Under the pieces are notes generated by a model. The model did not search any database. It saw only the letters and a list, made by a program, of their open reading frames with translations, and was not told the DNA's origin. Of a stretch of 64,000 nt of DNA, positions 18,698-38,745 are shown one piece after another. The stretch lies in the NCBI GenBank assembly GCA_004431415.1, contig QPMI01000029.1, forward strand, positions 1 to 64,000, given 5' to 3'. Within the stretch, counting starts at the first letter, position 1, and every line of letters starts with the position of its first letter. The position numbers were made by a program, and so were the translations under genes. This stretch comes from Cyanophora paradoxa CCMP329. Lineage: Eukaryota > Plantae > Glaucophyta.

Positions 18698-19413
18698 CTA
18701 TATATATATATTATCCCTGCTAGCTATATATTGTAGGCTATAGCTAGCCTAGGCAAACTATAGCTAGGCAGCCCGGCCCGGCCCTGCTGCTTGGGGGGCC
18801 CGGCGGCTGCTCCCTCGGCCCAGCTTGCATATATATTGAAGCCTGAATTAAGCCACTTGCAAGCAAGCAAGCATTGTATGTATATGTATTATATCGAGGC
18901 CCGCAGTACGCAGGCTCATATGTACACTTGAATGAGATTCGAATTGCCCCTAGGCCTTCCCCCCCCCTTCAGCTTCCACACACATGTACACACCAAACCC
19001 CCCTTCCTCCGGATCCCCTCTCCCCCCCCCCCCCCCCCCCCCCCCCCTGACGACGGACGTCGACCAGAAGCGCAAGCCCACCCTGATCATGAGCTGTTTC
19101 TACGACGTAAAGCCAACAACGCATTAATATTCGGGACATGCACAATTGCAATTTGCAGCTGAGCCACCTCATGATCAAAAGCTTGGGCCGGACTCCGTGG
19201 CCGGACATGGCCGGATCATCGGATCAAAACCCGGATGATGGGCCCATTGGGCCGGACTCCGCGGCTGGGACGTCGACCCGGGATCCCGGATTCCCGGATC
19301 ATCGCGATCATCGCGGCCGGACCCGGGATTCCCGCGGCCCGGATCCCGCCGTCCGGCGCCGGCCGGAGCGGCGGATCCGGAGTCCGGACTCCGGAGTCCG
19401 AAGCACTGAATGC

Positions 19414-20610
19414 CACTGATGCTTCGGAGCTTCATCGGATTCTTCGGAGCTTGCTTCCGTTTTTTTCGAATCGGAGCTTTCGGATAACGGCTCCATAGTG
19501 CCTCGCTCGGAAGTGCCGCTTTGAATTTTTCTGAAGCCGTCTGGCCCCTTTTTTTCAAGCCGCTGTCCCGAGTCCCGACTCCGAGTCCCGACCGTCGGAC
19601 TCCCGAGCGAACCTCGGCCTCCCGGGCCCCGGCGAGCAGCTGCCAGCTGCAGCCTGCAGGCCCTGAGGCAGCGTCAACGTCGAACGGCGAGCAGCCACTG
19701 AGCCACTCAGAGACTGAGCCGAGCAGTCCCGAGTCCCGAGTCCCGACGTCGACTCCCCTCTAGATCTAGTCCGGTCCGCAACGTTGACGCCCCGCGCCCA
19801 GCAGCTCCACGCCCTTAATGGCTTGGCCTGCAGCGAGTGTAACTTCGGGGGTCCAAAAAACTCGTAGCGTAAGCTTTATGATAAAGCCGCCGAGCCCGAC
19901 TGCAGAGACGGTCTAGATCTGCGGTCGTCCGCCAGCGCGCGCAGCTGCGCCGGGCCGGCACGCGCCGCGGCCGCGACAGATGAGCTGCGCATGCGCCTGA
20001 CCGCGGCCCTCGCACACGCACACAGCGCAGGCAATTGTAACCGCCGCACGCCGTGACGGGACACGCGCACGCGCCAGCACGATGCCGATCATGGCAATGG
20101 ACAAGGACAAGTTTGAGGACGACGACATCGCGTACGACGGCGACTACCGCTGGGCCCCCCTCAAGTATGTTTTGAACCGTTGAACTGGTATAAATGTGGC
20201 TTCGCAGCACGTTTGATTTAAGCTCCTCGTTCCCCCCGCGCGCTCAGCGAGGGGACGTCGGCCGGATACGCCAAGCTTAAGGCCAATTGCAAGGCAACGA
20301 GGGCCAAAGCCACGAGGACGGCCGTGCTCTACCGTGGCGTGCGTCAGCTGCAGGCTGAGCTCGAGGCTGACCATGAGGCTGAGGCTGAGGCTGAGCTCGA
20401 GCGCAGGCCGACTGCAGCTCGGACAGCCTAACGCTCACGGCTGACGCCAAGAAGCTGTCCGCGCACGTGAGCAGCCCGGCCCCCCCCCCTCCCCCCCCCC
20501 TCCCCCCGCCCCGCCCGCCCGCGCCCGCCTGGCCCCTGGCCTCCGCCTCTAGATCTAGAGCCCTGTCGACTGAGACTCGACTCGCGATCGCGACCGGCCC
20601 CGGACCGTCT
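19414..20610 (+). repeat. Segmental duplication block B, copy 1 (copy 2 at ~36113-37135)
   Basis: Shared strings such as TTCGAATCGGAGCTTTCGGATAACG, AGTGCCGCTTTGAATTTTTCTG, ATGGACAAGGACAAGTTTGAGGACGACGACATCGCGTACGACGGCGACTACCGCTGGGCC and GCAGGCCGACTGCAGCTCGGACAGCCTAACGCTCACGGC. Confidence 0.9.
20082..20466 (+). pseudogene. 3'-truncated copy of the beta/gamma-crystallin-domain gene (three exons)
   Basis: MPIMAMDKDKFEDDDIAYDGDYRWAPL..|..TAVLYRG|ADCSSDSLTLTADAKKLSAH, paralogous to 36521-36946; homology stops ~20610 just before the retroelement nest. Confidence 0.7.
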
Positions 20611-20708
20611 CCGATATCGATCGCGAACCTTCAAATTTGCCATCGCCCTTGGCCTATACTAGGAGAGACCCCCCCTTATAACATACATGTCAGCTACAGA
20701 GTTACGCA

Positions 20709-20881
20709 TTAATGGGTAGTAAAGTAGATTTACTGAGGTTAGCGAGCCGGCTGATCGAGCCCCGTTTCGCAGTCTAAACTTCAAGTTCCGAATTTGATTC
20801 AGGTAGTCAACTTGTACTAGCGTACCCATACGCGGTTTCGCGCGCAAGCGCGGCGCCCGAGCCGCCTCAATTTCGCGTTTC
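20709..20881 (+). repeat. 5' terminal direct repeat (173 bp) of the Ngaro-like element
   Basis: Identical by eye to 33976-34148; the first 4 nt (TTAA) overlap the TSD. Confidence 0.95.
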
Positions 20882-20895
20882 AGGGCACGCACAGC

Positions 20896-22230
20896 ATGTC
20901 AGGGCTCCCCGACAACAGCAGCGAGCGTCCCGCCGGTCCCGCTCCGGCACCTCGCCGCACAACTCGCGCTTCAGCTAGCGCTACCATGACGGCCAGCAGC
21001 AGCCGTAAAACCACTTCCTCAGCAACTTTCGCGCAGGCAAGGCGGGGCTCGCGCGCTCCGGTCGCCAGCGACTCAGAGTCAGCCGCAGCACCTTCGGCAG
21101 TCTCCGGAGCAGAAACCAGCGCCTCCGAGCTCGGCGAGCGTCCGCATTCAGCACGCGTCCGCTTCGCAGGCATCGAAAGCCCGTCCCAGGCAGCCGGCGC
21201 CGCAAATTCAAAAATTTCGCGCCAGCGGCGGCGGCCAGCCCCGGCCGATTCGGAGACGTCCCAGCGCCTGGATCAGCTCACTCGTGCAATTGCACACCTG
21301 GAAGCCCGCCTCAGCGCTTCGCCCGCGGCCCCCGCGGCCGATAGCACACCCGCCGCGAAAATTGATCGCGAGCGCGGCTCCACCTTCCCCAGATCCCTCG
21401 GCGCCCCGGGCACGGAGCTCTCCGCTCGTCTCCTGAGCGGCGAGTACATTGACCTCCTTCCCCACGTTTTCCGCCCCGCTTTCTCCTCCCACCCGATCGA
21501 TAAGCCCGCCTCCGTCGACCCCACCATCTCCGCCATCCTTTCCGCGGCCGGCCTGCGCTCCGCCTCCGGATCCCCCTCCTCCTCCCGCAACCTCAACGCC
21601 GTCGACTTCGGAGCCTGCCTCGCCGCCCTCGGGGTGGCGGCGGGCCGGCGCGAGAACATGCCGGTCCTGCCCTCCGGCAAGCCGGACTTCGAGGAGTCGC
21701 ACCGCCGGCTGATCGAGATCTTCCTGCACATGTGGGAGATCTACTCGCTCGCCCGCCGGGCCCCGTGGGCATCAGCCTACGAGTACTCGGTCCGGATGCG
21801 GCGCCAGATCGCCGAGCGCGCTGACCGCTCCCGAGCGCACGATCTTGGCGACGGAGACTCAATGATTCTGAATACGACCGTCACCAACAGCGCCCCGCCT
21901 TCCGATGAGCCCGGCCCCCTCTCCGCCGATTTCTTTCGGCCCTCAGCGCACGCCGCGGCCCTCCCGCTTGGGCGCCCGAGCGCGTCCCGCCACGAGGCCC
22001 CGCGGCCCTCGGCGGGCGCCGCAGTTCGCCAGGACCCCCGCTACGGCGCCGGCCAGCCGGGGGAGGACGTCTGCTGGCTCTACAACAACGGGCGGCGCTG
22101 CGAAGGCTGCCGCCGCCGCCACGTCTGCGTCGCGTGCGGGCAAGCAGGCTGCCGCGACGGCGAGGAGCACGCGTGCCGGGCCGCGACCAGCCGTTCGCGG
22201 GACGGAGGCCGCTCGCGCGGCCCCCTCTGA
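20896..22230 (+). CDS. Gag-like ORF1 with C-terminal zinc fingers (444 aa)
   Basis: Intronless ORF starting 15 nt after the terminal repeat; coiled-coil RLDQLTRAIAHLEARL, GEYIDL motif, W..AYEY...MR, and CWLYNNGRRCEGCRRRHVCVACG...HAC, typical of Ngaro/DIRS ORF1. Confidence 0.8.
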   Translation: MSGLPDNSSERPAGPAPAPRRTTRASASATMTASSSRKTTSSATFAQARRGSRAPVASDSESAAAPSAVSGAETSASELGERPHSARVRFAGIESPSQAAGAANSKISRQRRRPAPADSETSQRLDQLTRAIAHLEARLSASPAAPAADSTPAAKIDRERGSTFPRSLGAPGTELSARLLSGEYIDLLPHVFRPAFSSHPIDKPASVDPTISAILSAAGLRSASGSPSSSRNLNAVDFGACLAALGVAAGRRENMPVLPSGKPDFEESHRRLIEIFLHMWEIYSLARRAPWASAYEYSVRMRRQIAERADRSRAHDLGDGDSMILNTTVTNSAPPSDEPGPLSADFFRPSAHAAALPLGRPSASRHEAPRPSAGAAVRQDPRYGAGQPGEDVCWLYNNGRRCEGCRRRHVCVACGQAGCRDGEEHACRAATSRSRDGGRSRGPL

Positions 22231-22359
22231 GCCCCCTCGCGCTCCGGCGCGGCCGCCGCCTCCCCCCAGCGGCCACTCCCGGCGCCCGCCCCGCAGGCTG
22301 CGCGCCTTCTCAGCCCCTCTCCCCTCCCATCTCCCTGCCAAGAACTCCTTCCCTGCAGC

Positions 22360-23251
22360 CCGCCCTGCCGGCCCTCCGGGCCCCGCGGCAGGCGCCGTCC
22401 TTCGCGCTGAGTTCGCGGGTCTACCCCGCCCCTCCGGAGGCGCCGCTGCCGCCTCCCCGCGCCCTCGCCCCGCCGGCCCCCCGGGCCCCACGGCGGGCGC
22501 TGCGGGCGCCGTCTCTCGCGCTGCGTCGCGGGTCTACCCGCCCCTCCGGAGGCGCCGCTGCCGCCTCCCCGCGCCCTCGCCCGCCGGCCCCCGGGCCCCG
22601 CGGCGGGCGCCGCCGGCGCTGTCTCTCGCGCTGAGCTCGCGGGTCTACCCCGCCCCTCCGGAGGCGCCGCTGCCGCCTCCCCGCGCCCTCGCCCCGCCGG
22701 CCCCCGGGCCCCGCGGCGGGCGCCGCCGGCGCTGTCTCTCGCGCTGAGCTCGCGGGTCTACCCCGCCCCTCCGGAGGCGCCGCTGCCGCCTCCCGCGCCC
22801 TCGCCCGCCGGCCCTCCGGGCCCCGCGGCAGGCGCTGCGGGCGCCGTCTCTCGCGCCGAGCTCGCGGGTCTACCCCGCCCCTCCGGAGGCGCCGCTGCCG
22901 CCTCCCCGCGCCCTCGCCCCGCCGGCCCTCCGGGCCCCGCGGCAGGCGCTGCGGGCGCCGTCTCTCGCGCCGAGCTCGCGGGTCTACCCCGCCCCTCCGG
23001 AGGCGCCGCTGCCGCCTCCCCGCGCCCTCGCCCCGCCGGCTCTCTGGGCCCCGCGGCGGGCGCCGCCAGCGCCGTCTCTCGCGCTGAGCTCGCGGGTCTA
23101 CCCCGCCCCTCCGGAGGCGCCGCTGCCGCCTCCCCGCGCCCTCGCCCCGCCGGCCCCCCGGGCCCCGCGGCGGGCGCCGCCGGCGCTGTCTCTCGCGCTG
23201 AGCTCGCGGGTCTACCCCGCCCCTCCGGAGGCGCCGCTGCCGCCTCCCCGT
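22360..23251 (+). repeat. Tandem array, ~8 copies of a 114-bp unit, within the 5' part of pol
   Basis: Anchor CTACCC at 22421, 22534, 22645, 22758, 22870, 22984, 23098 and 23212 (spacings 111-114); the unit encodes LPRPSGGAAAASPRPRPAGPPGPAAGAAGAVSRAELAG (38 aa). Confidence 0.95.
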
Positions 23252-26200
23252 TTAAAATCTCTTGCATTAGCACACAACACAACTACAATGAGTTTCACAT
23301 CGCCCAATAAATCTCTCCGACTAGATACTATCGAGGACCGTCGTATGCTGTGCTTTAGAAAGTACAAAATGAACGAAAGGTTTGAAGGTTTCGTGTCTAG
23401 ATATCTAGCTAAGGAGGTTTCTAACTAATACTAATGATGTGGAAGCTAGCTGTATCGATTTCTAAACCAACCTAAACTCCCGGCTACGAGGTCCTATCTC
23501 TACACAAGACTCCCAATCATGGTATGTCCGCCGCCAGCGCTGCCCAAGGGCCTCGCCGCGCCGTGTGCCAGGCTCCTCGCCAGCCCCAGTAGATTGGGCT
23601 ACTGGCCGCCTCCTGCCGTCGCCTCCGCCGCCTCCATTTGTTGGTGTTGCGTCCTCCGGCCCCGCCCCCAGACCGCAATCCCCAGTGTCTCCCTCTAGCG
23701 CGGGCGCGCCCTCTGTGTGCCCACGCCCAAGCATACCTGTTCGTATGGTCGTATACTTGCATGGCCGCTGAAGCCCGGACCCAGCCGTAGTCGTCTGGCG
23801 GGCAGCTCAGGTGTGAGAGGGCTAGGGTTTCCCCGCCTTGGTGGCGGGACTCGAGGGCACCGCACTCCCTGCAGCGTTCCCGCTGCCGGGGCTCCGGATC
23901 CGCGCGCTTCCTGCGAGCGTTGCCAGCCGTATCGTCAGGCGGCGCGTCGGCCTCGCGCCCGCGCGCCTCAGTGCGCTTCGCCTTGGCGCGACGTTCTTTC
24001 ATGACCTTCGTGATCCCGCACGCCTTCTCCCACTCCGCGTACGCCTGGCATCTGGCGGCCCACGTTTTATGGGCCTGCTCGCCTATGGCCGTCGTCAGCT
24101 TGCGCACGACCTGGGCAGCTTTCTTGGCGTCCGTGACGGTCTCGCGAATCATATCGGTGAGGCCCGCCGGGGGCAGCCCCCGTAGCACGCACATCTGCGC
24201 CTGCCGTTCAGCTGCCGTGAGCGTCGGGTCGTTTACTCTCGTGACCTTCAGGGAGCTGGAGAGCGCGTGTGGCACTGACCGCTTCTGCGCGCCTTCGAGG
24301 GCCTCGCTGACCGTCGCTGCGATGCGTGCTTCCGCAGCGGTGCGCGCCTCCGTCGCCACCGCGCTGGGGCAGGTGAGGACGTGCTCCAGCGTCTCCTCGG
24401 GCCCAGTCACAAGCTGGGGCCGGCCGTCGCCATCGATTTCCCGTGTGCTGCAGAGCGCACAGAGTCCTGCCGGGTTCACTTCGCTGTAGAGCTCGGGCGC
24501 GTCTCGCTTGCGGACGAGGGCCGTCGCCACCGTACCCAAAACGAGTTTCATGTGCGTACCCCGGAAGCAGTTGCTCTCTCGGCTCACTCCGACTCGGCGG
24601 GGCCCCATAGCCATCTGATCGTATACTGCGCCGTGATCCACTGGCAGCCGTAGCCACTCCCCGGCCTTGAGCTGGTTCGCCCACGCGAAGTGCGTGTGGT
24701 GCGCGTGAAGCACAGCGGCGTGCCGCCGAGGGTCGCCTTCGACTCGCCTGACTATCCCGGTCGGTCCCTCGATCGTCAGCACTGCCGGCATGCTGAACTC
24801 GGGCGGCAGGAAGATGTTCTCGTCCAGTTCCTCCTGTTCCAGGTGCGCGCCTTGATCGGCCGCTCTGTCGGCGGCGTCGTTTAGCTCGTGCATATCCTCG
24901 TCGCTGTGCGCCTTGACCTTGATAACCGCAGCCGGCCGCTGCCGATCCCGTCCCATCACCAGGGCGCGGAACTTGGACCACGCGTACAGCTCAGCGCTGC
25001 ACGTGTTCCGGATGTAGTCTCGCATGTGCATATCGTGCGCATTCAGCACGAACTTATCGAACCACGTGCAGACGTTCTGACTGTCCGTGTGCAGGCGCAC
25101 CCCCTGCGCCGCGAGCACGTCGGCGACGATCGCAGCCTGGAGCTCAGCCTTGTTGTTCTCTTGAAGCCCGCGCAGCCTGCCAACGTACGTGCCTGCCCAT
25201 TCCGGGTGGTTCGCCACGGTCCCGTCCGGGAACTCAGCCGGGCTCACGACGCCGAGGCCCGCGTGCGCCCCTTCCGTTTGACCCTTCTTCAGGCTCCCGT
25301 CCGTCCATATCCACTGCTCGAGTTTCCCCGGGCGACGGCCGAGCTTCGCGAGTTCCGCCTCTTCGATCTGCTCCCAATTTGCCAGCATGTGCTGCCAGTA
25401 AACGGTGAGGGTGACCCCTTCCTGCGCCGCCCGGGAGTCCCAGTGGCGCGGCGCTCCGCCCGCGTAGTAGAGTTCGCTCTGCTCTGCTGAATCTGACACA
25501 GGTTGTGCCTCGTCCCGCGGCTCGGCGCCCGGCGTCGCCGCCGCAGCCACTTCCAGCGCGGCCTGCAGCTCAGCCTCGGCCTCCGGGCTCAGCTGTTCGC
25601 GGAGGAAGCGCTCGTCACCATCCTGTACGGCTTTCACGCGGGCCTGGAGAAGCAGCGCCCTGCGTTTCTCGTCGTCTTGCGTGCGCAGGCCCGGGTCGTA
25701 GTACTCCAAGGTCGGTCGCAGGGCGACCTGCTTGCGCCCGCGCTTCGACTTCGTCTCCTGACCCGCCGCTACCGCCGGCGTCTCCTCCGTCGGTTCGCCT
25801 TCCAAGGCGAGGAGGGTATCCTCCTCCTCCCACCAGCCCTTCCCGTGCGTCCACGAGCCGTCGCACTGACTCATTTCGGGCAGCGCGATGGAGCATTGCG
25901 CGTGCACCGGTCGTCATGGTGCCAGTACTGCTTCCCTGTCCCTGCACCGCCGTGTACGTGCTCGTCCGCCCTCTATTTCGGGGTGCCGGCAGTGACCGTC
26001 GCACCGGCAGTAGAGTCCCTCTTTCTCCGCGTCGGGGTCCGCGCCCTTTGGCACCGGCACCCAGTGCTCCAGCAGGTACTCCGACGCTAATATGCTGCCC
26101 GTCTCGGATTTGAACGTAACGACTCGCCCCACGTGGGGCTCGGCAGATTCATCGTGCAGTTGCTCCGCCTCAAATACGGCTACGAACGCGTCCTTTGCCC

Positions 26201-29200
26201 ACTTCACCTTCCGGGCCCCGCCAGGGAGCGAGGCCATGGCTGACGTGCGCTCTCCTGCCCGCCGCATCGGGTGCCGCAGCTGCTTCCCATCAACCGCGAG
26301 CGCGTTCGCTACCTCACGCCACCACGCAGGCTCGCTCTTCTGCAGCGTCCCCTTGGGCGCGCCCATGTACAGGTCCTGCCAGGTTCGCAGGGTCTCGCCG
26401 TCCGCTGCCGTCACCGCGTCCATGGTCGTCACGCCCGCCCCGTACAGGGCAGGGGCCGCGACGCTGAAGACGGATCTTGGGATGTGCATTGCCACGACGT
26501 AGCGCCGGTCGAGGCGCTCCGGGTCAGGCCAAGGCTCCGCCCGGGCAAGGTGCGGAACGCCGCATAGCGCGCGTGATTCGACATCAGCCGGTACTTACGG
26601 CGCTGCATTTGCGGCATGATCGCCGCCAGGGAGTTCCCGCGGGCGAGTTCGCTGGAGATGGGCGCGTTTAGGAACTCGGTCGGGAGCAGAGGCACCCCAA
26701 GCTTCTCCTGCAGTGCGCGCACCCGGTGCCGTACCCCCCGAGCCAGCAGCGAGCCCTTGGGCGCGCAGAGCCGGATCTGAGCCTCTGTGATTTGCGCCTC
26801 CGCTTGCAGGTGGGCTGTTCGTTTGAGGCTGTACCCCCCGTGGCTCCAGATTGCGTAATTCGTCGTCGAGGCGGCGAGGTTCCCGTGGTGCTTGACGACC
26901 CTCATCCAAATACGATCGAGTTCCTGGCACTGACTCTCGCTCAGGGTCATGAGCTTCAGGCCGTACGAGATGCGGGCCTGCACTACGGCCTCGACAAGGT
27001 AGCAGGCCTCGTTCGCGGTGAGCTTCTTGCGTTCTATCAGCGCGACTGCGCCCCGCGCCTGATCGCAGATGTACTGCCACTGACGATCCCAGTTCAGGTT
27101 TGCGCTCATGTATACCCGAGGAGCTTGAAGTGCTCTTGGGGCTGGCGGACAAGTCCGACGGGGGTACCGTTGATCTTCGGCGGGAGGGCTGCTTCTCCTT
27201 CTTCTTCGCGGCGGGGTGGGCCCCAGGTTTGCTCTCAACTTCGCGACGTGCGTTGTTCCACGTGAAGATCGTCTTCTTCGCGTTGACCTCGATATCGTGC
27301 AGGCGGAAGAACTCGCCGGCCACGTCGGCCTGGGCCTGTAGCCCCGCATGCTTCCGCTCATCCACTTCGTGTCATCGGCGTACGCCACGCCGCTGACGCG
27401 GGCCCGGCCCTCGCGTTCCGCAGCATCGGTCTCCCTCGGGTTCCCCATCACGTACGCCGTGCCCGGCTCCTCCCAGCTCTCGGGTGGGCATAGTGCTCTA
27501 TCGTCTTTGCCGTCTTCTTTCCGTGCTGGCGCTCGTGCTGATCCAGGCGCTCTTGCGCGCAGAGGAGGGCATCGTAGAAGATCAGCCAGTGCAGCGGCGA
27601 CTCGACACCGCCCTGCGGCAGCCCGCACTCGAGCTCGAACTCGTCGGAGAGGCCGTGACCGGAGATTGCCCGCGCCCTGCGGCGCCGGAATATGTTCCTG
27701 TGGAGCTCGATGTACCCCTCGGGTACGTTCAGCCTCCGCATCGAGAGCTCCATGCTCTCCCACGAGACGGAGTCGTACGCTCGCCTGATATCCTGCAGCA
27801 GGATGTACAGGGGCTTCTTGAACTCCTTCGCGTCCTCGAGGACTGCGTTAAAGACGTGGAGGGCGTCGTCCGTCGAGCAACCAGGTCTGAAGCCGTAGTT
27901 GGCCCCTTTCAGGAGCCCGTTCTGATGGATTGTCCGGGACAGGCGCGCGTTCAGGAGGCCAGTGGTCAGCTTCAAGGCCACCTCCTGCAGGGTGATCGGT
28001 CGCAGGTTATTTTCGATATCCCCGTCCCACTCCCGGCTCTTAGTAATGCCGAGAATGTTGCCCTGACACACGGCATCCGGCAGGTCCCGGAGGCGGATCG
28101 CTTCAGCCACCAGCGAGAGCAGCAGCTTCCGGCCCCAGTGTACGGGCTCCTCTTCCGTGGCCTCCTCGGCGCTCTCGTCGGCTGGGCTCGGGCCCTCCGG
28201 CGCTGGGCCACCGGCCTCGTCGCCCTTACCGTCTTTGGGCTTCGGCTTGGGCACCGGCGCCCATAGGAACTTTACCATAGCATACGAGAAGTTCGACGGC
28301 CCGGCTGCCGTGTTTCTTAGCGTTTTAATGTAGTCGCCGAGCTCGCCTTCGCTCGGCACCGACATGTCGTTTCGGAATAGTTCAGGATCCGCGTATGCTT
28401 TTGGCTCGTATTCCAACCTCCAGAAGTCGAGCAGTTCTTTCCCCATGCTATCCTTCAGCGCGCTTTCCGGTATTGTCTCTGGGTGCAGCCCACGCGTGGG
28501 CGTCGGCGCCGGCACCATTTCCGCCAGTGCTCTTTTAGGAGTCGTTTCACTTCCTCAGGCTCCGTGTAGATTTCATACGTTTTTCCGTCCTTGGACACAC
28601 GCGTGATGTGCATGATCGGGCGGTTTCGCGGCTTTTCTAGCACCGCGGCTATATAGGATCCGAGCTGGCGGCCGTCCATGAACTTGTCTAGCCTCTCTTT
28701 TAATGCCCTCTCGACGTCCTCCGCCTGGAGCGCCCGGCGGATTTTCTGCAGGTCGTGCCGCGTCCGGTTTCGCCATACTTTCAGCTCCCGGAAGAAGGTC
28801 GCCCAGTCTTCTTTGAGCTGCCGCCGGTGCACCTCGGCCCAGTCCTCTTCCTGATCAGCCGGGGGGTACCTGGGGACCGGGGTACGGCTGGGACCGGCGC
28901 GGGCTACCGCTGCGCGAGCCTTGTGAGCTGTGCGAGCTCGAGTGCGCATGTGGGGATCCGGGCGGCGGTGAGCCTTGCTCAGCCCTTGCTTGGCGCCGTT
29001 CAGCCGGACGGAGCGGGAAGGGTCGGAGGCCTTCCCTGGCGGTCACGTAGTGCAGCAGCTTCTCGATCGCCTGGACCGTCAGCTCCGACGGGATCCCGCC
29101 TGGTTCCTTCCTCCAAGCAGCGAGAATGCGGGCGACTCTGGCGTCGGCCTTCGCCTGCCACGGCAGGTTGCGCGGCTTGGTCGGCTTCCCCCTCGGCCCC

Positions 29201-31757
29201 TCATGCATAGATGTTCCTTTGCCACCTCCTGAACAAGGCTCGCGCACGCAGCGTGGATGCGGCTCAGTCGTTCGAGACGCTCTTCCGGCGTGCCCTCGCC
29301 GACGGCGTCAAGGTCCGCCCCGACAGCTTCGCCGAGCTGCCTGTTTAGCTCTCTTTTCAGCTCATCTTTCTCGTTTTGTGTGCGCTTCAGGCCGTCCGGG
29401 TCAAATACTGGTGGCCCGGGTTTCGGTTCTGGCTTCGGTCCCACCGGCGCTGTCATGCCCGCCTCCTTCAGGTCGAAGTCCGCGAACGCTGGATAGTGGT
29501 CCGAGTCGTGCGGCGCATCGACCCACGCGGGGCACGTGTGCGCGCTGAGGAGCACGTGATCCAGTGATTCCGAGACCAGCACTGCATCGATGCGCGCCGC
29601 GTGCCAGAGCGCATCTTTTGGTAGGTCAGCCGGCGTTTCCTCCTCTGCTTCGCGTTCCGCGTCCTCTGACTCGTCTACGCCGTCTGACGGCACAGGTGCC
29701 GCCGCCGCCCCGACCGACGCCCCTTGGCCCTTGCTTCCGTGCGGGGTGCGGTGCGTGATCTCGCGTGCTCCGCAGAGAGTTCCGTCATCATGTTTCGCCG
29801 CGTGGGACATCCCGGCGTCGCGCAGGTCCCACGAGTCGATCATCGTGTGCCACCACTTCCGTTCGGCTTTGTGGCTCTGGGCCAGGGCGCCGTTTCGGAT
29901 GCGCGAGCTCGACGGGACCGGGACCGAGTTCCAGTCTCCCAGGAGCAGCAGGTGCGCGTTTTCACGCTCGTAGAAGTCGTCGTACATCTTCGTCAGTTCT
30001 TCGACGACCTTCTCCTGATCCTGGCGATGCGCAGCTTTGCTCTCGGACGCGGGCATGTACACGCTCGCCACGAAGAGCTGGAGGTTCCCTTTGAAGCGGA
30101 GCTCGAATCCGATCAGCCGGCCCTGGACCTCGTACTTCGTCGTGAGGTGCTTGACCCATTGCGGCGCGACCCAGAGAGCGGCGCCGCTCCCTCGCGTTCC
30201 GTCTCCTGATTTTAGCGTGTACAGGAGCTTTCCGTGCGTTATCGCGCCTTCCGGCTGGAGCGGGTCCTCCCCTCTCGACCTCAGGGCGGCGGCCATCTGG
30301 GGCCTTGTCATCGACAGCTCCTGCACGCCCGCTACATCGACGTCCCAGCGGCAGCAGAATTCTTCTAGCTGCTGCAGCTTGTAGGCGCTGGACCCTCTCG
30401 TGTTGAAGGTCATGGTCCTCAGCACCCCGTCCGGTTTCTGCTTCCTGATAGCCGGCTCGTCCCCTATGAAGTCGCCACCTTCGGGAACAGTCTGGGGGAA
30501 AGACATTCTCCAGACGGAGCGTCGCAGCCGCCGCGGGTCCCGCGCCCCCGGCCTTCTTGTTCAGCTGCAGCTTGGTTGCATTTTGTTTCTTTTGGCCCGT
30601 CGGCTTGCTGCCGGACGCCTTTGTAGGTGGGGCTGCTTTTGCCGCGGCGGGGCCGCGGCCGCAGATTTAGTTTTCTTTTTCATTTAGTAACATTAGATGC
30701 GTGGACTTTTTGCATCCCAGTGCCCCGCGGATGTGCACGGGAAAGCTATGACCTGCGGGGCAGATACCGGTGGTGCGGTTGACAAGGCCTGAGCGGGGAG
30801 GTTACAGGCAAGCTTAAGCCTGCTAGAAGTGAAGGGATTCTCATTGTCAGAGCACAGAGCACAGAGGGAGCACAAAGGGCGGTGGCTAGCGATGCTCATG
30901 ATCAAATCTAGACGCCGGCTAGCGCTGCGGCAACGGCCGCTTGCTGGGGGCACGCGCATATGCAGCCGGGCGGAGCGCGGGGCCAGCGACGAGGTCAAAA
31001 GGGCTTCCTCGGACAAGTCTTCGACTTGCAGGTCGTACTGGCTATGGTCTGATAGCGACGCATGCGCAGCTGGGCTGCTCTGCGCAACGAAGACGTGAAC
31101 GTCAACGTGCAATCTCGAGGGCAGCAGGGATTCGTCGGCAGCACTTCTTTCAGAGACTAAGGCGGCATCCGGGGCGCGGCGTGGTCGCCGGCAGGAACTG
31201 GCATGGATCGTTTGCACTGCGGGCACGACTGAGTCGCCGGAGCTTGACCCGGGGCCGGGAAAAGCTCGATCGGCGAAGAGACATTCCGAATCACGACTCG
31301 AAAGTCGGAGATCAAATTCCGTGGGCGCCCGGCGGGCCACCGAGCAACAAGCGAAATCCCGGCGGGCCGAACGGACGTACGCGGCGGCGGCGGGGATCTA
31401 AGTCTATGTTTTAGAGGGTCTGGGCATGTGCACGCCGCCGCGAGGGAGCTTGCGCAGGCAGCGGGGGCACGAGAACTATTCAAATTTCGGGAACATGGCG
31501 CGCGCCAGAGGGCTTCCCCTGACTGAGAACAACTTCTATTCCATGGATTTGGTGGCGAAAGGTCCGATTTTAGAGCGAAACGCGAGAGGACGGCCGGCAT
31601 ACCTCCATCTCCGGAATTCCGTTGATGTCGATACCACCGGGCGCGCCAGGGGCTACCGAATGCTTCTACGCTAGCCGCTGGTCCCGCCGCGCTTTTGCAC
31701 GAGCAGGAAAGACGTTTTCAGGAAGCCCCCTTTTTTTGGGGTACACGAAAACTCTTT
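23252..31757 (-). mobile_element. Non-LTR retrotransposon (LINE), 8.5 kb, nested antisense within the Ngaro-like pol
   Basis: APE, RT, RNase H and CCHC domains on -; flanked by CGCCGCTGCCGCCTCCCCGT at 23232-23251 and 31758-31777 (19-20-bp TSD); the host repeat unit and reading frame resume after 31777. Confidence 0.92.
23517..30683 (-). pseudogene. LINE polyprotein (APE endonuclease - RT - RNase H - CCHC zinc finger), ~2400 codons broken by several frameshifts
   Basis: APE: MTFNTRG, VAGVQE, LLGDWNS, RIDAVLVS, SDHYP (29079-30506). RT: LRPITL, NYGFRPGCST, QDIRRAYDSV, GLPQGGVESP, AYADD (~27350-28520). RNase H: WTDGS, NNKAEL, HTDSQ, KVKAH, NDAADRAA. Zn finger CALC...ETLEHVLTCP (23517-25907). Frameshifts may be sequencing errors. 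Confidence 0.9.
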
Positions 31758-31777
31758 CGCCGCTGCCGCCTCCCCGT

Positions 31778-33633
31778 GCCCTCGCCCCGCCGGCCCTCCA
31801 GGCCCCGCGGCGAGCGCCGCTGGCGCTCAAGGCTCGGGCCTTCCGGACGCCGGGCCGCGCCTCCTCGCCGGGGGCAGGGCGCCGCCGCCGCCGCCGCCTT
31901 TCTCCATTGAGGTCCCTGACTTTGATGTCGACGAGCTCCTCCCAGGCGTCCCGCCCCGCCTCGCCCCCACGCCCGTGCGGCCCGATCGCATCGCCGCAGC
32001 CCTGGAGGGCCACCCCGATCCCTCCCTTGCCGCCCGCCTCGCACACGGGTTCGCCCACGGCTTCCCGCTGCAGTACCGCGGCCCTTCCTTCTCTGCAATT
32101 TCCCGCCCCGAGCCCTCTGCCCTTGAGCACATCGACGTGGTGCGACAGGACGTCGAGAAGGAGATCGCCATGGGGCGGGTCGCCGGCCCGTTCCCGTCTC
32201 CTCCCCTCGCCCCCTTCGTTGCCTCCCCAGTCGGCGCCATTCCGAAGAAGCGTTCGACCAAATGGCGCCGAATTCACAACCTTTCGTACCCCAAGCACCG
32301 CGGCCCGTCAGTCAACAGCGGCATTGACCCTGACGAGCTACACTACCAGAATACGAAGGTCAGCAGAGCAATTGAGCTTCTGATTCAGCTCGGCCGCGGC
32401 GCCGAGATGGCTAAGGCGGATATCGAGTCCGCTTTTCGCCTGCTGGCGGTACGGCGGAAGGACTGGTGGCTCCTCGGCTTCGCCCTCCCCTCCCGCTCCA
32501 ATCCCACCGTCCTCGAATTTTTCATCGACCTCTGCCTCCCCTTCGGTGCCCGCTCCTCCCCCCGCATTTTCGAGGACCTCGGCCAGGCCCTCGATTTTGC
32601 CCTCCGCCGCCGTGGGCTCGATCCCACCCGATATGTCGACGACATTTTCCTCATCGGACAGGCCGGCACCGGCGAGTGCCGGCGGTACATCGACGTGCTG
32701 CTCGAGGTCTGCGCGGACCTTGGTATTCCTCTGGCCCCGCATAAGCTAGAAGGACCGGGCACCCGCCTCACCTTCCTCGGCATCGAGCTTGACAGCCTCG
32801 CGATGGTGGCCCGCCTGTCCCCAGAGCGGCTCGCTGATCTCGAAGCGAAGCTCGCGGAGTGGGCCACTCGCAGCCATGCCTCAGCCGGCCAGCTCCGCTC
32901 CCTCGCCGGCTCCCTTGTCTCGGCCGTGCCCGTCGTCCCCGCGGGGCGCTTTTTCCTTCGGCGGGTCGTGGCGCAGCTCGCCACTCTACGGGCCAATCAC
33001 CATCGCGCCCGGCTTCATGCCGGCTTTCATGCGGATCTCACATGGTGGCGCGACCTCCTCCAGCGGCTGCATGGAGTCCGGCTCATCCCTACGTCTGACT
33101 GGCAGTCGGCCAAGGTGCTGCGAATCCAGACCGACGCCAGCAATCTCGGCTTCGGCGCAGTTTTCGGCAGCTCGTGGACCTTCGGATCTTGGCCAGAGGG
33201 CACGACTCGCAGCATGCCCTGGCGCGAGCTGATGGCCCTCGTCATCGCAGCGGCGACCTGGGGCCCCAGCTGGCAGCAGCAGCGAATTATTTTTGAAACC
33301 GACTGTAAACCTGTCTTCCATGCCCTTTCCGGCGGCCGCATTTCGCAGCCGGCCCTCGCTCCCCTCCTCCGCTCCCTCTACCGCCTTTCCGCCCTCCACC
33401 ATTTCGAGTTTCGCGCTGTACACGTCCCGGGCCTCGAGAACACGCTCGCCGACCCGCTCTCTCGCCTACAGATCAGCGTTTTCAAGGAGCGGCTCCCATC
33501 AGCGGATTCCTCGCCGACTCCCCCTCAGTGGCCCGAGACCCAGGGCTCGCTGCCACCGCCGCCTTCTCCTCCTCGAGCTCCCTCACCGTCTGCCGCCTCC
33601 GCTCCTCAATCAGGCCAGCCACAGGCCCCGTGA
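31778..33633 (+). CDS. DIRS/Ngaro-type reverse transcriptase-RNase H (3' part of pol; 5' part at 21905-23251)
   Basis: HPD..L..GF.HGF.LQYRGP, EIAMGRVAGPF, SPVGAIPKK, WRRIHNLS, KADIESAFR, LPFGARSSP, YVDD, FLGIELD; RNase H TDAS..GFGA, WREL, TDC, NTLADPLSR. The frame is open from the LINE junction. Confidence 0.92.
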
Positions 33634-33975
33634 GGGCGCCGGCCAGTCTCGAGCCCGCTCTTCTAGATTTATCGATATCGTCTTTCTTCTCTTTCCTCGC
33701 TGCTTCACACCAAACATATTTTATATCATTTATTGGATGCCGCTTCTCTTCATTATATTTCGTTCGCATCGGAGGCGCCCAGAGGCCAGCACCCTCGTAG
33801 CTGTCGGTCTAGTCACAGACCTTAGCCTCGTGTGCAGCCCCCTGATCGTTTACAGGCATCCAATTGTAGTCATCTAGAGTGTACGGCCGGCAGTATATTC
33901 AAATCAGATATCTCCAGCATACGATCCTGATCTAGATCTCAGAGTCTTACCCGCGCGAGAAATAAGCCGAGTGAG

Positions 33976-34148
33976 TTAATGGGTAGTAAAGTAGATTTAC
34001 TGAGGTTAGCGAGCCGGCTGATCGAGCCCCGTTTCGCAGTCTAAACTTCAAGTTCCGAATTTGATTCAGGTAGTCAACTTGTACTAGCGTACCCATACGC
34101 GGTTTCGCGCGCAAGCGCGGCGCCCGAGCCGCCTCAATTTCGCGTTTC
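33976..34148 (+). repeat. 3' terminal direct repeat (173 bp) of the Ngaro-like element
   Basis: Identical to 20709-20881; followed by CCGCCC and the TSD copy. Confidence 0.95.
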
Positions 34149-34170
34149 CCGCCCCAGAGTTACGCATTAA

Positions 34171-34637
34171 CTATGTGAAGAAAAATCTCTGTGACGCCAT
34201 AGTAAAAAATGCGTTAACTATGTCGAATATGTGTCAAACGGAACAGGGAACTCTGCCCTTTCGCGTCGTCCTGCTTCGCCTCCGCCTCCGCGTCGTCTTG
34301 TTGTTCCTCTTACTTGTCTGCTTCCTGTTATTTATCTTTCTCAAATTTGTCCTCCGCTTCTTAGTGATGTAATTCCTTCCGATATTGATGGTATCTCTAG
34401 CTCTGGCTCTTCTTCGTGTCAGTCATCCTCTGTCCCTAGATCTGCTCGATTTCTCGTCTCTTCTCGATCTGTCTCGAGCTCTGTGTCTTTTCTTTTTTAT
34501 TGTCGATTTTGGCTCTTTGTCTTATCTTTCTTCGTGCTCTTGTCTTAGTTATTTTGCTTTTTTGTCTTTATGCCCCCTGGGCAGCCCCCGCAGTGCTGGT
34601 GTCTAGAGACTGTGGCCGGTAATTCACCAAAAAAAAA
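34171..34637 (+). mobile_element. Possible 3' remnant of another retroposon (host of the Ngaro-like insertion)
   Basis: Strongly pyrimidine-skewed tract 34260-34570, short GC-rich structured segment, then A9 at 34629-34637; absent from duplicated copy 2. No TSD found. Confidence 0.3.
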
Positions 34638-35067
34638 CTCTATTAAAATAAAATTAATAGAGATTTGGAAAATAGAACTGATGCGGCGAAAGAATAGATG
34701 TCACAGAGATAGCAAGCTGCTGCAGGGCCGGCGCCGGGCCCCCGCACCGCCCCCGCTTGCTGCGCCCGCCGCTGCGCTCGAGCTCCCGGGGCTGCATACA
34801 TGCACTCAAGACCTGTATTCTGCACACACTTCATCTTCCGCCCCCGCTCGCCCCGCCCCGCCGCTCGCGATCGGGAGCTCGGCGGCCCCGATCGCGATCG
34901 CGAGCGGCCATCGATCGCGATATCCGCTCTGAAATTAGAATTAATATTACTACATTTCTCAAGCCCCTCGCCTCCGGGATCCAGCCGCTTTAGCCCGCGA
35001 CCGACCCTCGACGATCCACAGTAGCGCACGGGGCTCGCCGAGTTGCAATTGGGCGCCTTGCTGCATC

Positions 35068-35377
35068 CCACGATAAAGTCCTCTTCGACCGCATCGAGCC
35101 CGACTTCTTCGGTGCGCGTACCCCCCTCGTCCTTCCCCCCCTTCCAACTTGCTTTTAATCTCATTGTTCGCTCGCTCCGTCCCTACGTAGGCTCGAAGCA
35201 CACGGGGTTCTTCACGTTCACGATCCTCGGGCGCACGCGCATCCAGGTACCTCTCAAGCTCACCTGAAATCAATGCTAATCGGATCCCACCTGACCCGGT
35301 TTCGATCTCAGGTGGCTGCGTACTCGCGGCACGCGCACGGGGAAGACCTCCGATACGTCTCCGAGATCCAGAAGTAA
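35068..35377 (+). pseudogene. 5'-truncated duplicate of the purple acid phosphatase 3' end (three exons with introns)
   Basis: HDKVLFDRIEPDFF|GSKHTGFFTFTILGRTRIQ|VAAYSRHAHGEDLRYVSEIQK*; begins mid-exon with no upstream exons. Confidence 0.88.
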
Positions 35378-36520
35378 CTGCCGGGCGGTTACTAACTGCC
35401 GGGCGGTTACTAACGGCCGACTTCCTCTGTCGGGCGGCCCGGATCCGGACGTTGGACCGGGGTCCCCATGGCCAGTCTCGGGAAGAGGCGCCCGATCTCG
35501 TCCGACCGTCCGTCTGCACACTTTTAGTTATGTGCTCTGCGATTTTTTGGGGGGGCGCTCCCGTCCCTCGTGTCTCTCCCTTTGTGGTTCACGCGAATTC
35601 AACTTAGGATTTTGCAGTCTCCAGCCTACAGAGGACTATCTCTTTTGCCGTTGCGAATTGTGTCCATCGAAGAAGCTAGGATCGGAGTTTTTCAATTATG
35701 TATTCCCTTTCCATCATAGTATGGCTTCAGGCAGTCCTCTGAGTCAATCAGTGACTCGTTTGCAGTGTTTGTATCGGAGTCTTCAGTGTAAATGTCGATG
35801 TCCACGTGCTATCTTGAAAGCCGCGCGCGCAGCTGCACCGGAGTCGTGACCGGACCAGCTGATATTCACGGCATCTAGATCTAAAGCTTGCCAATGGAAT
35901 TAATATATATTGGCCGCATTCAGAGACATTGACGACATCGCGGCCCCGATTCGCGGCGGCCGAGTACGTATACGTTGGTACGAGTTGCAGTTGCTAAAAT
36001 ATTAATTTCATCATGGAAAGTTGAAAGCATCAGTGCCCCGGTCCGGGAAATCGGCGGTAATCCACCGGACAACCGGTACCGGGATATCGATATCGATCCC
36101 GGGTTCCCGGAGCACTGATGCTTCGGACTCTTTAAGTTCGGAGGAATCGGAGCTTGAACGAGCTTCAAGGCTTCCGGTTCTTTCGAATCGGAGCTTTCGG
36201 ATAACGTTAACAGCTCGATAGTGAGCATGCTTCGCTCGAAAGTGCCGCTTTGAATTTTTCTGTAACCGTCTGGCCCCTTTTTTTCAAGCTGTTGCCGGCT
36301 AACTTGCCGCCGCTGCTCCGCCGCTTCTGCGCATGCTCTGAGCCTCTGCTGGCCGACTCCCGAGTCCCGACTCCCGAGTCCCGGCTCCCGAGTCCCGAGT
36401 GACCTTCCCGGGAAGGTAGCGTGAACGTTGAACGGCGAGCGGCAAGTTGCCGATCATGGCGATGGACAAGGACAAGTTTGCGAGCACGATGGACATGGTG
36501 AACGTTGAACGGCGAGCACG

Positions 36521-38745
36521 ATGCCGATCATGGCGATGGACAAGGACAAGTTTGAGGACGACGACATCGCGTACGACGGCGACTACCGCTGGGCCACCCT
36601 CACGTACTTGACTTGTATATAATTATATATATAATTAGCTATAGTAAGCTTCACAGTATACGTACGTATGTATGATCGTGAGCTCTTCGCCCAGCGAGGA
36701 GACCTCGGCCGGGTGCGCGGCCGCCAAGGCCGCCCTGCTCGCCTCGCTCGGGGCCAAGACCACGAAGACCGCTGTGCTCTACCGTGGCGTACGTATACGT
36801 GGCCATAAGCTTAGAATTAAGCTTAAGCCCGTCATGATCATGATCAACTTTCGAGGCTAATTATTATCCGATGATTTCGAGCGCAGGCCGACTGCAGCTC
36901 GGACAGCCTAACGCTCACGGCCGACGCCAAGAAGCTGTCCGCGCACGTGAGCCGCCCGCCCGCCCGCCCGCCTGGCCCCGGCCCCTAGCCTCCGCCCTCT
37001 CTAGATCTGGTCCCTTCTGTTTGATTTAGATTTCGAATTCTTCGCCGCTTGCCCGGCCCGCGAATTCGACTCGCGAACGACGGCCGTCGATTGAGACGTC
37101 GACTCGCGATCGAACCGCGATCGGCCGCGGACCGCGCGCCGCCGAATCTTAAAACTTCGTTTAGGGTCTTTGAATTCGTCGCCCTACGTCTCATGATTAC
37201 CTTCCACCGCCCCCCCCCCCCCCCTCCGATCCCCCCTCCTCCGATCCCCCCCCCCCCCCCCCCCCCCCCCCCCGCTCAGCGGCTCTGCGCGGTCATCCGC
37301 TCTAAAACTTTTAAGCCCGCGCCCCGCCCTCGCCGCTCCACGGTACTATGGTAGCGCACTGCGGCATGGCCCGCGGCGCCGGCGCCGTGCTGCAGCTGCA
37401 TCGCAGAGCCGGGTATATATAAAATCCGGGATCCGGTCCCCCACGCCGCAGAAAGTGGCGTCTGCCAGCAGCCTGAACTGGAACGACCGGGCGACCACCG
37501 TCTGTCTCGGTGAGGCATGGCCAGCGCACGGGCAGCGAGTTCCGAATTCGAGTCTGCCCGCCCTTCGCTGATTCATTAGTCATGATTATTTCAGCGCCCA
37601 ACACGGAAGTGAAGATGTACTGGGACAAGAACTACGACGTGCCATCTATTCTTCGCCTTCTTCTAGATCTCCACCCCCCCCCTCCTTATTTTGTGTGCGA
37701 TTTCCGTCGCAGGGGTACCGCTGCTGCGCGGAGAACGCGGAGACGGCCGCGGGCTTCGAGTGCTTCGAGCTGGACGAGAAGCACAAGGTCGGAAAGGACG
37801 CGGACCTCGAGCGGAACTTCGCGGACGAGTCCGTGCTCTAATCTATCGCAAATCAAATGATCATAACTTTCAAAAGTCGACCGATTCAATCGAATCGAAT
37901 TGAATCTGTCAAACTATATATAACGTCGATCCGTTTCATGAGCTTAATTTAAAGCTCGAGCCCGCAGCGTGTCGAGCCTGAAGGTCGACATGGCGCAAGA
38001 CCTCGCGACCGGCTCGACCGTGCAGCAGGTCCGACGGTCGCCTCTTTTATGTACATCTAAGCTTTCAGCTTTCTCTTCACCGAACTCTGAAACCAAAAAG
38101 CTTGCCGGCGCCGATCGCCTGATATAATATTCAATTTCGCGTCTGATTACAATATATACCGCTGCATGCGCAGATCCTCTACGCCGACGCTGATCTCGAC
38201 GGCGACGGCAGCTCCTTCGTGCGTCCAGTTGAATTTCTCATCATTAAATAACCAGGTGTAATCGCATTGAACATAAAACGTTGACGCAGGAGCTGGCGCC
38301 CTCTGAATTTCCTTTGCTGCACGGGGACGCGTTCGCCGTAGAGTCCGAGCTGGGGCCCGAGGTCCGTGCCCCCCCCCCCCCCCTCTCTCTTCCTCTCCCC
38401 CCCCACTCCACCCCCTCGATCTAGCTGCCCCCCCCCTTAAGCTTCCCCCCCCCTCCCCACACACCTCCCCTCCTCCCCCTGTTCTCGCACCCCTTCTCCC
38501 TCTTCCCCCCATCCGGATTCCCCCCAGCTCCGCCGAAGATTACCATTTCCAGAGCTTGCCGCCCGCTCGCCCCGCCGAGCATGCGCATTAGACCTAGATT
38601 AGCATTCGACGCTGACTCGTAAAACACCCGGCCCCCCTCCGCCTGCCAGGCGGGGAGCAGCTTCGAATTCGAATTCGAGGCGGCCGAAGTCTGCATCGAC
38701 GCGGCTGGCGATCCGGGGGCGCGCGACGAGGTGGAATTCTTCTAG
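36521..38745 (+). CDS. Beta/gamma-crystallin (Greek key) domain protein, multi-exon; ends uncertain
   Basis: Spliced motifs AVLYRG|ADCSSDSLTLTADAKKLSAH|KVASASSLNWNDRATTVCL|APNTEVKMYWDKNYD|GYRCC...NFADE|VSSLKV...|ILYADADLDGDGSSF|ELAPSEFPLL match the crystallin pattern (LY..xNF.G.....L....(W/F)ND..SS..V). Confidence 0.65.

Follow-up and report, generated by a model that had tools for sequence, protein, structure and literature searches.

The window described here is a stretch of 64,000 nucleotides from the glaucophyte Cyanophora paradoxa CCMP329 (assembly GCA_004431415.1, contig QPMI01000029.1, positions 1 to 64,000 of the forward strand). Positions 20697 to 34170 of the window hold, together with its flanking duplication, a retrotransposon of Ngaro type, whose family has lost its tyrosine recombinase by deletion, is present in several copies and has an autonomous partner in the same genome. 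The copy in the window lacks the B2 segment and is flanked by a real target-site duplication (TSD) of 16 bp, a combination for which no description was found in the literature searched. The window copy is probably a non-autonomous, recombinase-deleted member of the family, which was inserted non-canonically at a staggered nick resembling those made by long interspersed nuclear elements (LINEs).

The autonomous partner is represented by gene model P0336 (tig00000882_g5255, 970 aa). Residues 163-688 of P0336 are 91% identical over 526 aa to the pol protein of the window copy, and P0336 continues in frame past the reverse transcriptase (RT) and RNase H into a SAM-like domain (Phage_int_SAM_4) and a Phage_integrase domain. 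Homology to P0336 stops at window position 33552, and no tyrosine recombinase similarity was found anywhere in the window. Since P0336 keeps the recombinase in frame behind an RT/RNase H of 91% identity, the family was identified as a non-autonomous deletion derivative with an autonomous partner. An earlier reading, made from the letters of the window alone (the sequence-only reading), had raised the question whether any relative carries a tyrosine recombinase, and P0336 provides a positive answer from the same genome. The undescribed recombinase-independent lineage suggested in that reading is contradicted both by P0336 and by the contigs of other copies, which continue from the A repeat over a spacer into B as described below.

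The shortened pol is not a peculiarity of the window copy. At least seven other contigs carry gene models 94-100% identical to the window pol. Of these models, five extend as far as the 3' end of pol, each on a contig of its own, and stop at the stop codon of the window or at most 11 aa beyond it. No Cyanophora recombinase gene model is located on any contig carrying the pol of the window family. Copy number was estimated from contig depth in two DNA runs, where other copies were seen as short contigs aligned to positions 31400-35400; the single-copy flank had a depth of about 90-100 and the pol contigs of 500-680. A contig matching 33531-33747 with zero mismatches, i.e. starting at the end of RNase H and reaching into the 3' region, had a depth of 540-570. 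This is about six times the single-copy depth, and about six copies therefore have one and the same junction. A variant contig of 92% similarity also crosses this stretch. A one-off recombinase-deleted copy, the other possibility named in the sequence-only reading, does not agree with a common pol end on at least five contigs and a junction contig of such depth. The deletion derivative has outgrown its parent type. A search for contigs encoding the 98% paralog P0002 gave no match, and an exact scan of metagenome contigs with a 26-mer of the A repeat was equally negative.

The family is similar to other non-autonomous deletion derivatives in that an internally deleted element outnumbers its autonomous relative, here 91% identical at the amino acid level, in the same genome. 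It differs from them in keeping an intact-looking gag and RT/RNase H, with only the integration enzyme lost. TOC1 of Chlamydomonas is also a non-autonomous element of the DIRS order. Proteins of DIRS-1 were shown experimentally to act in trans (PMC7192593), which makes supply of the recombinase in trans a reasonable assumption for the present family; canonical copies would presumably be provided with the enzyme in this way.

A possible trace of the lost enzyme is found downstream of the end of the P0336 homology. The tail of recombinase P0213, which belongs to the same 90% cluster as the P0336 recombinase, matched 30 aa from position 33585 in a tblastn comparison (16/30 identical, E 4e-4 against the 601-nt tail). 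Among 3648 six-frame sites of the window this match was at the top, narrowly, with 59 against 54 for the runner-up, and a profile hidden Markov model of Cyanophora recombinase C-termini did not detect the frame at 33585-33674. The matched tail sits just after the catalytic-tyrosine motif of P0213. If the match is real, the frame might weakly be taken as a trace of the end of the recombinase, not of its start, and the deletion would comprise about 286 codons. A vestigial recombinase start, which had been proposed for the overlapping frame at 33528, is thus not what the sole and weak match points to. In this frame 'AATAAF' also matches box II of recombinases, but the match was discounted, as it overlaps sequence homologous to P0336 in the pol frame.

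Assignment of the RT to the DIRS order, as already claimed in the sequence-only reading, is supported by its probable nearest relatives, which are elements with gag, RT/RNase H, tyrosine recombinase and split direct repeats. Outside the genome, the best matches of pol were metagenomic and animal proteins about 520-600 aa long, with 38-42% identity. In three of the four relative loci examined (L001, L002 and L004), a gag-like open reading frame (ORF) is followed by RT/RNase H and by a Phage_integrase protein of about 305 aa; in the fourth, L003, no recombinase was called. In locus L001, a 180-nt A repeat is found at the 5' end and recurs close to the 3' end; another repeat is located both before and after this internal copy. 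The arrangement is A1-[ORFs]-B1A2B2, the layout that defines Ngaro elements. Ngaro elements have this layout without a methyltransferase domain (PMC8547959, PMC13465315), whereas DIRS1 and PAT carry such a domain (PMC8547959, PMC13465315, PMC3266345). Within the genome, the paralogs P0059 and P0336 carry PF00589. Two more Ngaro-type lineages with 52-61% RT identity are present, and at least one of them, the P0059 lineage, encodes a recombinase. The label 'Ngaro-type' is based on architecture and nearest neighbours.

The coding content fits this assignment. Gene model P0208 matches the gag-like ORF1 in its N-terminal part with 99% identity, and the Cys/His motif at the C-terminus of the gag-like ORF1 is found at the same relative position in ORF1 of L001. 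The repeat region linking gag and pol is also present in P0208 and P0336. The listed pol ORF starts at 31975, while homology to gene models begins at about 31798, and a Cyanophora paradoxa entry of EukProt, tig00000133_g7669, has the same sequence as the pol protein. Pfam identified only RVT_1 and a weak RVT_3 in pol, with no methyltransferase, protease or integrase domain. The claimed absence of recombinase, protease and integrase was accordingly borne out.

In its gag-like ORF1 followed by RT/RNase H, and in the lack of a methyltransferase, the window element resembles Ngaro elements such as those of Cafeteria burkhardae (PMC8547959) and L001. Further points of agreement are the A repeat, which measures about 175 nt and is present 5'-terminally and close to the 3' end, the A-spacer-B continuation in other copies, and the nearest RT relatives, in which pol is immediately followed by a recombinase gene. 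The window element departs from Ngaro elements in that its family has lost the recombinase, and in that the window copy has a 16-bp target duplication and no B2. With long terminal repeat (LTR) retrotransposons the element has in common identical direct repeats around gag and pol and a flanking duplication. Unlike these, it has no protease or integrase, its repeat starts with TTAATG/TGGG and ends with TTTC, so that TG..CA ends are absent, six extra nucleotides follow the right repeat, the duplication is 16 bp instead of 4-6 bp, and the RT groups with the DIRS order. A Penelope-like element with pseudo-LTRs was considered and dropped; the kin of the RT are in the DIRS order, and no GIY-YIG domain was detected by Pfam in the ORFs tested.

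The repeats of the family were deduced from the joints in contigs of other copies. These contigs follow the window sequence up to 34154, insert 12 letters, of which three versions occur, and resume the window sequence at 33772. Other copies therefore read A2, an 18-nt spacer and B, as in the A2B2 end of a canonical element, and the joints place the start of the B segment near 33772. The canonical family layout would be A1-gag-pol-B1-A2-spacer-B2. Summed contig depth is about 1000 in pol and increases to about 4000 over 33700-34150, as would be expected if A and B are present twice per element and additionally in solo AB units. Solo AB units have been reported in Cafeteria (PMC8547959). In the window copy A1 and B1A2 are present, B2 is absent and the flank starts 6 nt into the spacer; no further copies of A or B segments were found elsewhere in the window. 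The sequence-only reading had found no B1/B2 split repeat, which is correct for the window copy but not for the family.

The order of parts given in that reading (TSD, 173-bp repeat, gag, pol, about 340 bp, repeat, CCGCCC, TSD) was recovered in full (Table 1), with a distance of 342 bp between the pol stop and A2. The flanking 16-mer, CAGAGTTACGCATTAA, occurs twice in the window, even with two mismatches allowed, while 0.02 occurrences are expected by chance. As had been noticed, TTAA is common to target and repeat at the left junction, where the left 16-mer overlaps A1. The duplication thus measures either 16 bp or, with TTAA counted as a microhomology of 4 bp, 12 bp; A1 is 169 nt long if TTAA is assigned to the target. 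The copy ends in CCGCCC, and the reported lack of poly(A) at its 3' end was confirmed. The G+C content of the window is 60-75%. In contigs of other copies the 16-mer does not follow CCGCCC; these continue into the spacer and B. The 16-mer is therefore not a terminus of the other copies on the 3' side, and it is a real target duplication. A 16-mer belonging to the termini of other copies had been named in the sequence-only reading as a refuting outcome, which was not observed on this side.

An exact 14-mer of the A repeat (20746-20759 and 34013-34026) recurs inside the gag ORF at 21704-21717. The recurrence could be accidental, or it could serve a function, for example in strand transfer or bridging.

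Table 1. Positions of the element, its repeats and duplications, and the nested LINE in the window
Feature	Position	Strand	Remarks
TSD, left copy, 16 bp	20697..20712	+	Final TTAA shared with the start of A1
A1, 5' copy of the 173-nt direct repeat	20709..20881	+	100% identical to 33976-34148
gag-like ORF1, 444 aa, with C-terminal Cys/His motif	20896..22230	+	Cys/His motif aligns with ORF1 of L001
GC-rich 57/114-bp tandem repeats, Pro/Ala-rich gag-pol linker	22336..23250, resuming 31758-31827	+	Interrupted by the LINE
Nested LINE TSD, left copy, 19 bp	23232..23250		
Nested LINE, 8507 bp, with apurinic endonuclease (APE), RT and RNase H	23251..31757	-	Pfam; junctions; secondary insertion
Nested LINE TSD, right copy, 19 bp	31758..31776		
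pol, RT and RNase H	31798..33633	+	Pfam RVT_1 E 1e-10; weak RVT_3 match
Approximate junction of the ~0.86-kb recombinase deletion	33553..33585	+	End of P0336 homology versus start of P0213-tail match
Possible remnant of the recombinase C-terminal tail	33585..33674	+	tblastn with P0213; weak
B1, internal copy of the B segment	33772..33975	+	Left limit set by joints in contigs of other copies
A2, internal copy of the 173-nt repeat	33976..34148	+	100% identical to A1
CCGCCC, first 6 nt of the A2-B2 spacer	34149..34154	+	Element cut off here, B2 absent
TSD, right copy, 16 bp	34155..34170	+	Perfect match to 20697-20712

Two other insertions in the window can be compared with that of the Ngaro-type copy. 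The first is the LINE nested in it. Contigs of other Ngaro-family copies pass straight through the LINE site, with a loose end at 31758, and the LINE is therefore a later insertion that is private to the window copy. A contig of its 5' region has about ten times the single-copy depth with zero mismatches, from which it follows that the LINE family is young. Read on its own strand, the LINE terminates in a T4A3 tract. Its APE, RT and RNase H are distributed among overlapping ORFs that are not in the same frame, which means frameshifts, introns or indel errors of long reads. In gene model P0060 (tig00020801_g13987) an RNase H-like part of a LINE, 82% identical to the nested LINE (compared with window positions 23997-24791), is joined to a Ngaro RT of a sister family. 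The same LINE family therefore seems to be represented at a second locus, within or beside a Ngaro element.

The second is a fragment of the plastid gene psbC (CP43), located on the minus strand in an AT-rich insert of 152 bp at 725-876 and encoding a 50-aa piece (Pfam PSII, E 9e-4). Perfect direct repeats of 16 bp border the insert on both sides (709-724 and 877-892); the duplication of the Ngaro-type copy has the same length. With the inserts in sense orientation, the first-nick sites (nick at the slash) are CCCCG/TG for the LINE, CTCTG/TA for the Ngaro-type copy and TCCTC/TA for psbC. All three are pyrimidine-rich, followed by T and a purine. This is compatible with one enzyme having made the three nicks; three sites prove nothing.

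Further 16-bp duplications were sought by an exact-repeat scan of the window, and three candidates were not counted. The 16-mer at 1201-1216 and 5845-5860 ends in TTCGTTCGCAG, the two copies being 4.6 kb apart, and the same 11-mer ends the stretch 925-941; it looks like a recurrent 3' end of introns. The 16-mer at 4566 and 4832 is part of a local tandem repeat, and that at 40908 and 41267 is palindromic.

A history that accounts for these features can be proposed as follows. The ancestor would have contained gag and a single RT-RNase H-recombinase ORF, as in P0336. One internal deletion of about 0.86 kb would have removed nearly the whole tyrosine recombinase, and the deleted derivative would then have multiplied to at least 6-8 copies with the recombinase, and perhaps other proteins, of autonomous relatives acting in trans. 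In the case of the window copy, RNA or linear cDNA may have been copied or joined into nicks about 16 bp apart, with TTAA as microhomology at the 5' junction and the overhang filled in. Linear cDNA is known for DIRS-1 (PMC7192593). A completed cDNA, in which A1 had been regenerated from A2 as proposed in DIRS models, could then have been joined there. As the origin of the nicks, a LINE endonuclease would be most likely: LINEs are active in the genome, one of them is nested in the window copy with a duplication of 19 bp, and the psbC fragment of the window has a duplication of 16 bp.

Tyrosine recombinases integrate by strand exchange at a short shared sequence, without target duplication (PMC3266345, PMC13465315). 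Integration of this kind is a hallmark of Ngaro elements, and the window copy with its perfect 16-bp duplication does not show it. A copy that lacks B2, breaks off within the spacer and carries a 16-bp duplication is not the product of a tyrosine recombinase; the perfect repeat at both ends, the arbitrary 3' end and the 4-bp microhomology on the 5' side fit entry of RNA or linear cDNA at paired nicks. That the window copy was inserted at a staggered nick by something other than a recombinase can be stated with fair confidence; a LINE endonuclease, with or without the RT of the LINE, is proposed as the agent with less confidence. The idea of the sequence-only reading, insertion at staggered breaks or with an endonuclease taken from a LINE, agrees with the window copy but is shown for this copy only.

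Processed pseudogenes of HERV-W were made by LINE-1. LINE-mediated retrocopies of LTR-type elements in general have terminal redundancy instead of complete repeats, lack the outermost part of the repeat and are flanked by a duplication of LINE length. The window copy shares these features, and its 16-bp duplication is of LINE-like length when compared to the 19 bp of the nested LINE. Of the known kinds, such retrocopies come closest to a Ngaro copy with a duplication and without B2. The window copy differs from them in having no poly(A) and in being known as one copy.

Several observations weigh against a LINE-type insertion of a family member as described. The ends were read for one copy of the family only, and the left end of this copy has no comparison to a canonical A1 start. 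Nothing ties the insertion to a particular LINE; poly(A), a LINE-derived 3' tail and microhomology at the 3' junction were all looked for in the window copy and not found, and the duplication of the nested LINE is 19 bp and not 16 bp. An empty site was not observed; the alignment of the left flank with its approximately 70% identical paralog gave no usable one. The contig depths behind the six-fold copy number are coarse estimates. Finally, a variant A at 34021 is common to both A copies of the window element (34021 and the corresponding base in A1), whereas most copies have T. The variant has about twice the single-copy depth and no master copy with it was seen. These findings are more easily explained by a completed cDNA, or by gene conversion at a later time, than by mere copying of a master RNA.

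At 34102, 34109 and eight positions in pol, the listed contigs show only the other allele. These allele differences, including that at 34021, may be due to contig filtering, strain differences or consensus errors.

Capture of a linear extrachromosomal cDNA by end-joining at a chance staggered double-strand break, with no LINE enzyme involved, is an unlikely but serious alternative to insertion at a LINE-type nick. The 16-nt overhang would have been filled in, and TTAA would have set the left junction. Both ends of the window copy indeed look arbitrary, the right end being 6 nt into the spacer with neither poly(A) nor 3' microhomology, and DIRS elements make linear cDNA (PMC7192593). The plastid fragment, which is an unlikely template for a LINE, has a 16-bp duplication as well. 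However, 5' overhangs of 16 nt are rare at random breaks, and two unrelated inserts at exactly 16 bp together with a LINE at 19 bp point to an enzyme with a set stagger.

It is more doubtful that the recombinase-less family as a whole has switched its mode of integration, so that most or all copies were inserted at staggered nicks, by target-primed reverse transcription or a borrowed LINE endonuclease, with duplications of 12-19 bp. A family without recombinase has nevertheless reached at least 6-8 copies, and the duplication of the window copy is clean. On the other hand, the other copies run from A over the spacer into B, as do A1..B1A2B2 elements integrated by a recombinase, and a 91%-identical autonomous partner encodes the recombinase. 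Action of DIRS proteins in trans was shown experimentally (PMC7192593), and no second copy with a duplication was seen, the flanks being readable for the window copy only. Similarly low probability is given to a family-wide LINE-type pathway with staggered nicks of about 16 bp that would also insert plastid fragments and other RNAs.

Canonical integration by a recombinase followed by a rearrangement with loss of B2, the 16-mer being an att-like core or a pre-existing local repeat, is highly improbable: 13 nt that include part of the target do recur in degenerate form in the right flank (34164-34176 and 34211-34223), and the last 13 nt of B1 loosely resemble the 16-mer, both ending in TTAA, but a deletion does not make a perfect 16-bp direct repeat abutting both ends of the element, and the 16-mer is found neither after the spacer in other copies nor anywhere else in the window.

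The flanks of the element have a history of their own. The left flank, 19400-20607, has the paralog of about 70% identity at 36100-37134 (alignment 36442-37134), with exact blocks of at most 26 nt. The paralog is located about 3 kb beyond the insertion site in the downstream direction, and this local duplication predates the Ngaro-type element. To the right, a 5'-truncated retroposon at 34251-34637 ends in A9 and has a summed contig depth of up to about 280,000, compared to about 95 for a single copy. Other copies of the low-copy surroundings are without the retroposon and have a joint from 34248 to 34636 with six shared letters, AACTCT. The duplication made by the retroposon is therefore short, unlike the events of 16-19 bp.

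Ngaro-type elements and non-autonomous derivatives are already known kinds, to which the pair found in a glaucophyte, with a clean deletion of the recombinase, adds a new member. A new class of recombinase-independent DIRS elements is not established on present evidence, and the insertion event itself rests on one copy. The pair shows that Ngaro-type elements in a glaucophyte include an autonomous and a non-autonomous form differing by one clean recombinase deletion, which constitutes a natural experiment on the functions that can be supplied in trans. The window copy, which starts with the first base of A and stops 6 nt behind A2, may in addition preserve the ends of a replication intermediate, and little is known about such ends in elements with split repeats. 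Together with the psbC fragment, the Ngaro-type copy hints at a pathway in Cyanophora by which unrelated nucleic acids are inserted, the stagger being fixed at about 16 bp. Should the family-wide switch prove true, the element would be a retrotransposon that has swapped its mechanism of integration, and not one accidental copy.

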